Origin: Magallana gigas
Taxonomy: Eukaryota
DNA length: 64,000 bases
Direction: 5' to 3'
NCBI RefSeq assembly: GCF_963853765.1
Contig: NC_088859.1
Span: 13,578,001 to 13,642,000, forward strand
The translations under genes were made by a program, and so were the position numbers. The notes under the pieces are model-generated. The model worked only from the letters and a program-made list of their open reading frames with translations, was not told the DNA's origin and ran no database searches. Of the stretch, positions 20,465 through 22,054 are shown piece by piece. Position 1 is the stretch's first letter. Every line of letters starts with the position of its first letter.

Positions 20465-22054
20465 ATGAGGTAAGACAGCCTCCATATTTTTTCCTTGACC
20501 TTTATTTTACAAATGGTTAAATGCCTTACTGATGGTCATTACAAATGCAAGGAAAGCAGTAAATGTTTGCATGAAAAAAACGAATGTCTAAATCTTTGGA
20601 TTTACTCTGCTCTTCCATTTTGTTGGTATTATTCTTTAATCAATATGTATGTAGGCCTGGTAAGCTAGTCACTTTGAGATTTGATCCGGGCTCTCAAGTA
20701 TTTCATGAATCCGGGAAATCTGAGTCCAACAATTTTGATCTTGATAATTGACATTAACAGTCTCTTGGGATTATTAATGAACTGATATTCATATTTCGAT
20801 TCTTCAAGTATTTGATCAAATACCACTTAAATGCTTTTGTATAGCGTTTATTCATGTATATATGCTTTCGTTTTGTTACGTGCATCTCTCTTCATTTCTT
20901 CAACATGGCAGATTGATAGTTAAATTTAAAATTGCGATTTAGTTAATTTGAAAAATTGCTGACCAATAGAAGCTATTTTTTTACTTGAAAATATGCTTTA
21001 TACGACACTTCGTATATCATTTCCTCTATGCGACGGTTTGAATGACGTTTGACTGACATATGCAAGGGAAACCTTGTAGATTGTCGATACATTTACATCA
21101 GATATTCCTGACTCATATAGTCTTGCTGTCAAACCACCAGACGGAATATATTGTTATCTACAAACCAAGCGACAGAAGCATGACGCAGTTTTAATTACAT
21201 CGATAAATGGCGAATGTGTCTTATGGGCTAGCTCATTACTGTTATCAACTTTCATTATAAATGTATGTATATCCTTTTCTCTTCCCAGCTCCTGCAGAGA
21301 AGGATGTCGAAGGGCATTTCGGGGGATCCTCCATATTCCTGGTTGCAAAACCTTGTGCTTCAAGTGCGTTCTCCTGCCGTGCTATTCTAACACAGATAGT
21401 GATGACGAGAAAGACAAGGACGACGAAGGCTACGATAGCTATGGTAACACGGACAATCACGCTCACCCGACTCAGGAAGACGGCCATGACACATCCGGGT
21501 CTCTGGGTCAGGTGACACACCATGATTACGTCAACAGTGTCGATTACACCAATGTTGAGATTGCAGAAACTGGACAATCTCAGAGTGCGGACAATGTTTA
21601 CGTTCCAATGCAACTGGAGTCGCTGGACCACCTCGTGGCAACCAGAAGCGTGAGCACTAGTGAGAAAGTACTGCTTTCGAACACTGATCTCATGACGTGT
21701 AGGCTGAAAGTGGAATGTCCAGACCCTACAGCGTCCTACGTGAACGTTCCCGAGACGAGTCCTTTACTGAAAGGGACAGGGGAGGATAGCACGGTTAGTG
21801 AAAAGAACTCCGGTGTTACTGATGTCATACAGGAAGTTGGAGAGTCAAAGACCGATGGGTCTAAACAGCATTCCAAGATGGCAGCAAATCAGACACCAGC
21901 CGACAAGGCATTAAAGCAGTCCAGTGTAGTGGAGGAGGGGGCAAGGACAGATAACTCTTCCCGCGACACCACGACACTAAATAGTTCAACCTCGGTGGAA
22001 GAGATTGAAGGACCATCCGGAAAGAAAATGGTGCTCCTAGAAACGGACTTATGA
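20465..22054 (+). CDS. Orphan 256-aa protein: Cys-rich basic N-terminus, acidic Tyr-motif tail, ends ETDL (exons 20465-20469 and 21289-22054)
   Basis: Exon 20410-20469 has good ttttacag and G|gtaag sites and ends ATG-AG. The acceptor ttcccag at 21288 joins it in frame to ORF 21353-22054 (MSSCREGCRRAFRGILHIPGCKTLCFKCVLLPC...). An in-frame TAA lies upstream of the ATG. Confidence 0.7.

Follow-up and report, generated by a model that had tools for sequence, protein, structure and literature searches.

An uncharacterised bivalve protein family bearing the predicted motif grammar of a membrane phosphotyrosine adaptor

The window analysed here is a stretch of 64,000 nt of AT-rich, eukaryotic DNA from the oyster Magallana gigas (NC_088859.1, positions 13,578,001 to 13,642,000; all coordinates below are positions within it). 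On its forward strand, with coding sequence between 20465 and 22054, lies a gene for a 256-amino-acid (aa) protein which is referred to here as the adaptor. This protein belongs to an uncharacterised bivalve family carrying the sequence grammar of a membrane phosphotyrosine adaptor, a function that is predicted from short motifs and their conservation.

Gene structure and transcripts at the locus

RNA evidence over positions 16300-22299 came from the alignment of raw reads of two poly(A) RNA-seq runs, together with two sets of RNA contigs. All features given below are on the plus strand. Exon 1 is non-coding and is represented by its 3′ end (15897-15925), with a GT donor at 15926. Exon 2 (20410-20469), which has its own acceptor, consists of a 5′ untranslated region (UTR) with stop codons in all three frames, followed by the initiating ATG and the next two letters, AG (20465-20469), with the donor GTAAGA at 20470. 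After a GT..AG intron of 819 nt (20470-21288), in which a pyrimidine-rich tract precedes the acceptor CAG ending at 21288, coding exon 3 (21289-22054) is open in frame up to the TGA at 22052-22054 and provides residues 2-256, as supported by both reading frame and RNA. The joint between 20469 and 21289 was found in six raw poly(A) reads with five distinct starts and in one contig from each contig set, and one RNA contig connects the end of exon 1, 20408-20467 and 21287-22299. The 3′ UTR reaches at least 22299, with ATTAAA at 22208. Strand-specific reads over the aligned region all derive from plus-strand RNA, which led to the rejection of two minus-strand open reading frames (ORFs; 21245-21631 and 21861-22193).

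The spliced translation runs from M-S-S-C-R-E-G-C to L-L-E-T-D-L and is identical to a database protein (P0039; NCBI, Logan; 468 contigs). Two database variants of 233 aa (P0042) and 264 aa (P0001) were rejected as isoforms, being ORF calls on unspliced or partial contigs. A chance ORF is ruled out, since the gene is spliced, expressed and conserved. The first-pass annotation, made from the DNA letters, had named transcripts in which the exon starting at 21289 merely adds a cytoplasmic tail to a larger receptor as evidence that would refute it. Among the sampled transcripts no upstream coding exon is joined to 21289, the only upstream sequences being the leader with its end at 15925 and exon 2 (60 nt). 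Because frame translations of the latter place a stop codon ahead of the ATG in each of the three frames, the product is a complete protein rather than a receptor tail, and the adaptor gene is a real, expressed and standalone gene. The same start, M-S-[SA]-C-R-E, is found in annotated orthologues from at least five species, including two Saccostrea species as well as Crassostrea virginica and Ostrea edulis.

The leader of the adaptor mRNA contains an upstream ORF of six codons (M-R-V-V-L-C-stop; 20411-20431, in exon 2). Should transcription begin far enough upstream, a further frame would start from an ATG at 15795, in the region of exon 1 (15795-15925), and close in exon 2. The main ATG has a C at position -3. 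Translation of the adaptor may be regulated.

A second mRNA is produced from the same first exon. An alternative exon (17829-18412), carrying an ORF of 187 aa (ORF1, 17849-18412), is spliced to exon 1, a joint found in six raw reads and one contig. Reads and contigs beginning at 17827 and at 20408 bear the same unaligned 27-30 letters, which match the window once, at 15897-15923, where the sequence continues with AG and then the donor GTAAAT. Because the same leader letters precede both positions, one non-coding first exon ending at 15925 splices to either 17829 (ORF1 mRNA) or 20410 (adaptor mRNA). Spliced-leader trans-splicing was rejected as the source of these letters, as they lie at 15897-15925 beside a GT donor. 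The transcripts support a single promoter that yields two unrelated proteins through alternative 3′ exons.

ORF1 encodes a Ser-rich disordered protein, from M-F-L-S-K-L-F-G-S-C-G to L-Q-I-V-S-V-V, which is unrelated to the adaptor and gave no Pfam match; its end, V-S-V-V, has the class I PDZ-ligand form. Its RNA depth is similar to that of the adaptor exon. ORF1 is 84% identical to a gene located 2.7 kb upstream of the C. virginica adaptor orthologue, its O. edulis counterpart (LOC125669664) is next in number to the adaptor gene (LOC125669663), and relatives were also found in Pinctada and, weakly, in Mytilus, where the relative lies upstream of the adaptor orthologue and keeps both ends. Coverage of the ORF1 transcript extends to about 19100 and, more weakly but above zero, to about 20433. 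One RNA contig is unbroken from 17827 to 20433, across the acceptor at 20409, and AATAAA occurs at 19648, 19843 and 20129; the coverage of 18412-20433 comes either from an extended 3′ UTR of ORF1 or from precursor that has not been spliced. A donor-like GAG/GTATGT overlaps the ORF1 ATG (17845-17853), and at the sampled depth no read or contig used it, including for a joint from 17847 to 20410. Part of the intron that separates exon 1 from 17829 is covered as well, within 16300-17300, by RNA contigs together with some stranded reads (depth up to 6 at 16500-16699 in one run, no joint reported); intron retention, a further alternative exon or a transcript unrelated to the two mRNAs could account for this. 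Long G runs are present at 17578-17592 and 17686-17703, just upstream of the 17829 acceptor, and reads appear to be cut there.

The protein and its family in bivalves

Although the first-pass annotation regarded the protein as an orphan, uncharacterised homologues are present in oysters, mussels, scallops, ark clams, and venerid and myid clams. A word-indexed protein search returned nine relatives (E 1e-161 to 6e-19, with 1e-105 to a C. virginica protein cluster); a profile of these nine gave 28 matches among 1.84 billion representative proteins, and a second profile search gave further ones. All named matches are bivalve proteins annotated as “uncharacterized” or “hypothetical”, and the remaining matches come from transcriptome or metagenome assemblies. 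The named members belong to C. virginica (LOC111120497), O. edulis (LOC125669663), Saccostrea echinata, Saccostrea cucullata and Mytilus galloprovincialis; to the ark clam Tegillarca granosa and the scallops Pecten maximus (LOC117323790), Argopecten irradians and Mizuhopecten yessoensis; and to the venerid and myid clams Mercenaria mercenaria (LOC123564957), Ruditapes philippinarum (LOC132737023) and Mya arenaria (LOC128219329). The LOC-numbered proteins among these are true homologues, 205-541 aa in length; like the oyster protein, all of them have the N-terminal Cys module along with SDDE..DEGY and YxN sites. The oyster protein carries the family signature C-R-x-x-C-R..P-x-C-[KR]-x-x-C-[FY]-[KR]-C-x-L-x-x-C followed by S-D-[DE]-E..D-E-G-Y. 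The profile searches returned no weak-but-significant match outside the family, which for a disordered protein is weak evidence of absence elsewhere; the family has been seen so far in bivalves only. Next to the Mercenaria family gene (locus L003) lie two 7TM receptor genes.

The expectation that such a protein would be invisible to domain searches held for the window protein and for ten members of the family: a Pfam-A hmmscan at E up to 10 returned no domain, only four families at chance level. The best of these, DUF5731, scored 16.1 bits against a cut-off of 27.1 (E 0.016, in two of the ten members) and was taken as chance, as were the sub-threshold rows for SH3-A_UBE2O, DddA-like and Pesticin_RB; no mention of DUF5731 was found in the literature. 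A sequence search of the PDB with the family profile gave no match at E up to 1, and the ESM Atlas gave no usable feature match for the window protein or the Mercenaria member, its structure rows (TM at most 0.21, on a model with pLDDT 0.36) being meaningless. A literature search on six orthologue LOC identifiers (LOC132737023 not among them) found no paper, and none of the LOC-numbered homologues has an ascribed function.

Two compositionally distinct parts can be recognised in the protein. Residues 2-35 (21289-21388) form a Cys-rich module of basic and hydrophobic character, with six cysteines among the first 33 residues (4, 8, 21, 25, 28 and 33) and C25-F-K-C28 followed by VLLP. Residues 1-35 have a pI of 9.2, while residues 36-256 have a pI of 4.36, with 42 D+E vs 17 K+R. 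Five of the seven tyrosines (34, 50, 53, 82, 88, 106 and 152) stand in YxN context (YSN, YGN, YVN, YTN and YVNV) and one, Y106, in YVPM. The five YxN sites compare with 0.33 expected from composition, a number that was reached in none of 5000 shuffles (p < 2e-4). The protein ends with E-T-D-L directly before the stop codon. These features had been read correctly in the first-pass annotation, as confirmed by the residue positions for the cysteines and by the spliced translation for the tyrosine motifs and the C-terminus.

The acidic disordered tail was borne out as well, by its pI and by an AlphaFold2 model (33-sequence alignment) of low confidence, with a mean pLDDT of 52.8 and a pTM of 0.18. 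The model contains one helix (residues 3-15) and a short hairpin (239-251) adjoining the C-terminus; LLETDL is the sole stretch with pLDDT around 80, and the Cys module shows no compact fold (pLDDT < 60). The protein is thus modelled as a disordered chain bearing short linear motifs. It is also predicted to have neither transmembrane helix nor signal peptide, because its most hydrophobic 19-residue window (residues 15-33) has a Kyte-Doolittle mean of 1.36 and contains Lys22, Lys27 and two Pro. In heterodont members a K/R-rich stretch precedes the Cys module, which is found about 50 residues into the chain; this excludes a signal-peptide role.

Between oysters and mussels overall identity falls to 34%, and selective constraint is shown to be limited to a few short islands, with almost no other invariant position in the roughly 200 residues of the tail. 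The N-terminal module is invariant as C-R-E-x-C-R-R-x-F-R-G-x-L-x-I-P-G-C-K-T-x-C-x-K-C-x-L-x-P-C-x-S. It is followed by an acidic block (residues 36-54, T-DSDDEKDKDDEGYDSYG-N; 21389-21445) with S-x-x-D/E sites of casein kinase 2 type, invariant in both groups as D-S-D-D-E-K..K-D-D-E-G-Y-D-S-Y-G; S-D-D-E fits a casein kinase 2 site. Beyond these, the invariant tail positions are one Pro, Y82-x-N, Y106-V-x-M, Y152-V-N-x-x-E and the terminal L-L-E-T-D-L. Y82-V-N (H-D-Y-V-N; 21527-21535) is a candidate Grb2-type SH2 site, and Y106-V-P-M (21599-21610) a candidate YxxM site for the SH2 domains of the phosphoinositide 3-kinase (PI3K) subunit p85. Y152-V-N-V (21737-21748) is the most conserved tyrosine motif, and the free LLETDL end (22034-22051) has the form of a class I PDZ ligand (x-T-x-L). 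The alignment of 33 bivalve sequences extends to scallops and heterodont clams; within it C28, S39 and Y152 never vary, and R5, C8, R9, P19, C21, C25, C33, G49, Y106 and N154 are at least 90% conserved. Selective conservation of the tyrosine motifs in orthologues, on which the first-pass annotation had made its proposal depend, was therefore found, with Y82xN, Y106VxM and Y152VN among the few invariant positions of the tail.

The YxN motif is enriched across the family as a whole. Counted over 24 members, YxN accounts for 84 of 234 tyrosines where 14.3 would be expected, an enrichment of about six-fold; the excess of Asn is at +2 in each clade and not at -1, +1 or +3 of Tyr. H-[DE]-Y-[VI]-N is the commonest context, and members carry two to five YxN sites each. 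Oysters, mussels and the ark clam retain YxxM, which in scallops overlaps YVNM. ETD[LV] is general in oysters, mussels and scallops, the last ending in LLETD[LV] or MLETD[LV].

Some further features were noted in the oyster protein and in heterodont members. L-E-T-D is the tetrapeptide form favoured by caspase-8-type proteases, and a conserved L-E-T-D (22040-22051) precedes the last residue of the oyster protein as a candidate site, at which a caspase-type cut would strip the final Leu only and destroy the PDZ ligand. Three features that are absent from oysters occur in the heterodont members (P0023, P0026, P0027, P0029 and P0097): an ITIM-like [VI]-T-Y-I-E-V, a Src-SH2-type site G-Y-E-E-P, and a polybasic extension at the N-terminus.

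Proposed function and alternative explanations

With moderate confidence, we propose that the protein is a docking protein attached to the membrane by S-acylation, to which Grb2 and PI3K are recruited via SH2 domains and which has a PDZ scaffold as a further partner; it would be a functional analogue, and not a member, of the LAT/NTAL adaptors. Membrane anchors that are S-acylated at several positions usually consist of densely spaced conserved Cys among basic and hydrophobic residues, and E-T-x-L-COOH is a class I PDZ ligand. The basic, hydrophobic six-Cys module would accordingly be S-acylated and hold the protein at the inner face of the membrane without a transmembrane helix. The H-[DE]-Y-[VI]-N sites Y82 and Y152 and, in oysters, Y88 (Y88-T-N, 21545-21553) would be substrates of Src- or Syk-type tyrosine kinases and, once phosphorylated, would bind the SH2 domain of Grb2/Drk. 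Phosphorylated Y106-V-P-M would bind the SH2 domains of the PI3K regulatory subunit, and the free LLETDL C-terminus, which matches the class I form x-[S/T]-x-hydrophobic-COOH at the level of sequence form, would dock on a class I PDZ scaffold. Since each member has two to five YxN sites, the protein would be multivalent for Grb2. The result would be a multivalent membrane platform that couples tyrosine kinases to the Ras-MAPK and PI3K pathways and has an origin independent of LAT/NTAL and FRS2.

The motif assignments follow those made for vertebrate adaptors. YxN is the Grb2 SH2-binding motif, YVNV is the Gads motif and is identical in LAT, YxxM is recognised by p85, and transmembrane adaptor proteins (TRAPs) are palmitoylated at CxxC (PMC3342071). 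This CxxC form is present in the oyster protein as C25-F-K-C28, inside the conserved six-Cys cluster. LAT, LAB and LAX are described as multivalent for Grb2 (PMC3291652).

Several points weigh against this proposal. S-acylation, tyrosine phosphorylation and SH2 and PDZ binding are all predicted from motif rules. Many YxN sites read Y-x-N-V/L and also match YxxΦ, as sorting and LC3-interacting signals do. Just two of the YxN sites extend beyond oysters, YSN, YGN and YTN being conserved in oysters only, and Y34-S-N falls within the Cys module. Heterodont clams lack YxxM, with an ITIM-like V/I-T-Y-I-E-V at the Y106 site instead, and end in D-Q-T-K-L-[IL], unlike the class I PDZ form, so neither feature is family-wide. 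The Cys module could bind metal instead of lipid, and the heterodont polybasic stretch could be a nuclear signal. The motif set named in the first-pass annotation is thus conserved in part: Y82xN, Y106VxM, Y152VN and ETDL hold in oysters and mussels, while the remaining YxN sites are confined to oysters and YxxM and ETDL are gone in heterodonts. Its claim of a lipid-anchored signalling adaptor gains from the conserved Cys module, YxN, YVxM and the PDZ-type end, but the function is a prediction and not all motifs extend across the family.

Among the alternatives, the least improbable, though still unlikely, is that a membrane- or scaffold-associated disordered protein uses its tyrosine motifs unphosphorylated, as sorting signals of YxxΦ type or signals of LC3-interacting type, and so regulates the trafficking of a PDZ-scaffolded complex. 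Y152-V-N-V, Y106-V-P-M, Y88-T-N-V and most heterodont sites (Y-x-N-L/V) do match Y-x-x-hydrophobic, acidic residues precede the tyrosines, and the C-terminus is conserved. However, the selected residue is Asn at +2, which neither YxxΦ nor LC3-interacting motifs need, the most conserved first site is Y-V-N-S or Y-V-N-E, in which +3 is not hydrophobic, and YxxΦ works on transmembrane cargo, whereas the oyster protein has no predicted transmembrane segment. We give somewhat less credence to the explanation that the Cys/His cluster at the N-terminus binds metal as a small module of a soluble or nuclear regulator in which the tyrosine motifs are incidental. Six conserved Cys and His18 are found inside 33 residues, and the K/R-rich stretch ahead of the heterodont module is a possible nuclear signal, yet His18 is not conserved and the spacing (C-x3-C, x12, C-x3-C-x2-C-x4-C), interleaved with Leu, Ile, Phe and Lys, is unlike that of CxxC zinc knuckles. 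Nor does the module, for which the model gives no compact fold, have a Pfam or PDB match, and the family-wide enrichment of YxN would be left unexplained.

A secreted acidic disordered protein of the shell-matrix kind, with the N-terminus as signal peptide, would agree with the restriction to bivalves and with the acidic, Ser/Thr/Asp-rich disordered tail (pI 4.4). This is very improbable, as Lys22 and Lys27 interrupt a hydrophobic core that is weak at its maximum (1.36), the module is internal in heterodonts, after about 50 mostly basic residues, and an invariant free C-terminus and YxN sites are atypical of matrix proteins. Hardly credible, and refuted for the transcripts sampled, is the explanation by which exon 21289-22054 is the cytoplasmic tail of a larger receptor with upstream exons: exon 20410-20469 does have an acceptor and is spliced to an upstream exon, but the only such exon is the leader common with ORF1, the stops ahead of the ATG close all three frames, and the orthologues share the same N-terminal start.

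The membrane docking protein proposed above can be combined with the shared first exon into a broader and more doubtful proposal, which we put forward tentatively. The adaptor would be a bivalve analogue of LAT/NTAL without a transmembrane helix, a multiply S-acylated, multivalent YxN platform nucleating Grb2-Sos and PI3K assemblies where PDZ scaffolding organises the membrane. Depending on the choice between two 3′ exon sets, one promoter would deliver either the adaptor or ORF1, and the locus would act as a signalling switch with two outputs, shared by oysters and mussels at the least.

LAT-type adaptors have been described from vertebrate leukocytes, and tyrosine-kinase signalling in invertebrates is usually explained by conserved PH/PTB docking proteins. 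If the docking function is real, a bivalve-wide, domain-free family selected for a lipid-anchor-like module and YxN motifs would be a clean case of a convergent membrane phosphotyrosine scaffold. It could also be the missing link from oyster and mussel tyrosine kinases or expanded receptor repertoires to Ras and PI3K, in immunity, growth and settlement alike. Motif grammar and clade-wide conservation can in this way give a testable function to proteins that are blank in domain searches.

Comparison with known docking proteins

The first-pass annotation compared the protein with LAT and NTAL, and the comparison stands as an analogy of convergent motif grammar; homology is not supported, given that the protein has no Pfam match and no transmembrane helix. 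Like LAT and NTAL/LAB (LAT2), the oyster protein is small (about 230-260 aa) and lacks any enzymatic or folded domain, with a CxxC-containing Cys site at what would be the membrane-proximal end and an acidic tail with several YxN sites including YVNV. The domain-free tail with multiple YxN that is typical of LAT/NTAL is found in the oyster protein too (five of seven Tyr, no Pfam domain, predicted disorder). LAT has nine conserved Tyr, and NTAL was discovered by a search for five YxN motifs (PMC3342071). Unlike these proteins, the oyster adaptor has neither a transmembrane helix nor an extracellular stub and has six clustered Cys instead of two; it further differs from LAT in its YxxM site, which is found in LAX, and in its PDZ-type C-terminus. 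Members of the bivalve family gave no match to the Pfam LAT, LAT2, PAG or LAX models, and the profile search returned bivalve-type sequences only.

PAG/Cbp is an adaptor that is palmitoylated and carries many tyrosine motifs. EBP50 binds its C-terminal PDZ ligand, so that a lipid-raft anchor is paired with a PDZ tether, the same pairing of lipid anchor and PDZ tether that is proposed for the oyster protein. PAG differs by its transmembrane helix, its Pro-rich SH3 sites and a tyrosine for binding Csk (PMC3342071); the helix is absent in the oyster protein and no homology was detected.

FRS2, Dof (stumps) and Gab/Dos resemble the proposed adaptor in being membrane-targeted multi-tyrosine platforms for Grb2 and PI3K, and YVPM is the p85 site of Gab1. 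FRS2, Dok, IRS, Gab and Dof differ in carrying PTB, PH or DBB/ankyrin domains, whereas none of the ten bivalve members has a Pfam domain. Because it has no transmembrane helix, no PTB/PH domain and no detectable homology, the oyster protein is placed outside LAT/NTAL, PAG and FRS2, the known proteins closest to its proposed function, and its sequence marks it as an analogue of LAT/NTAL rather than a family member. FRS2 is myristoylated, and the unrelated Frs2 and Dof do the same docking job in different phyla (PMC7260276), a precedent for the independent origin of lipid-anchored docking proteins across phyla.

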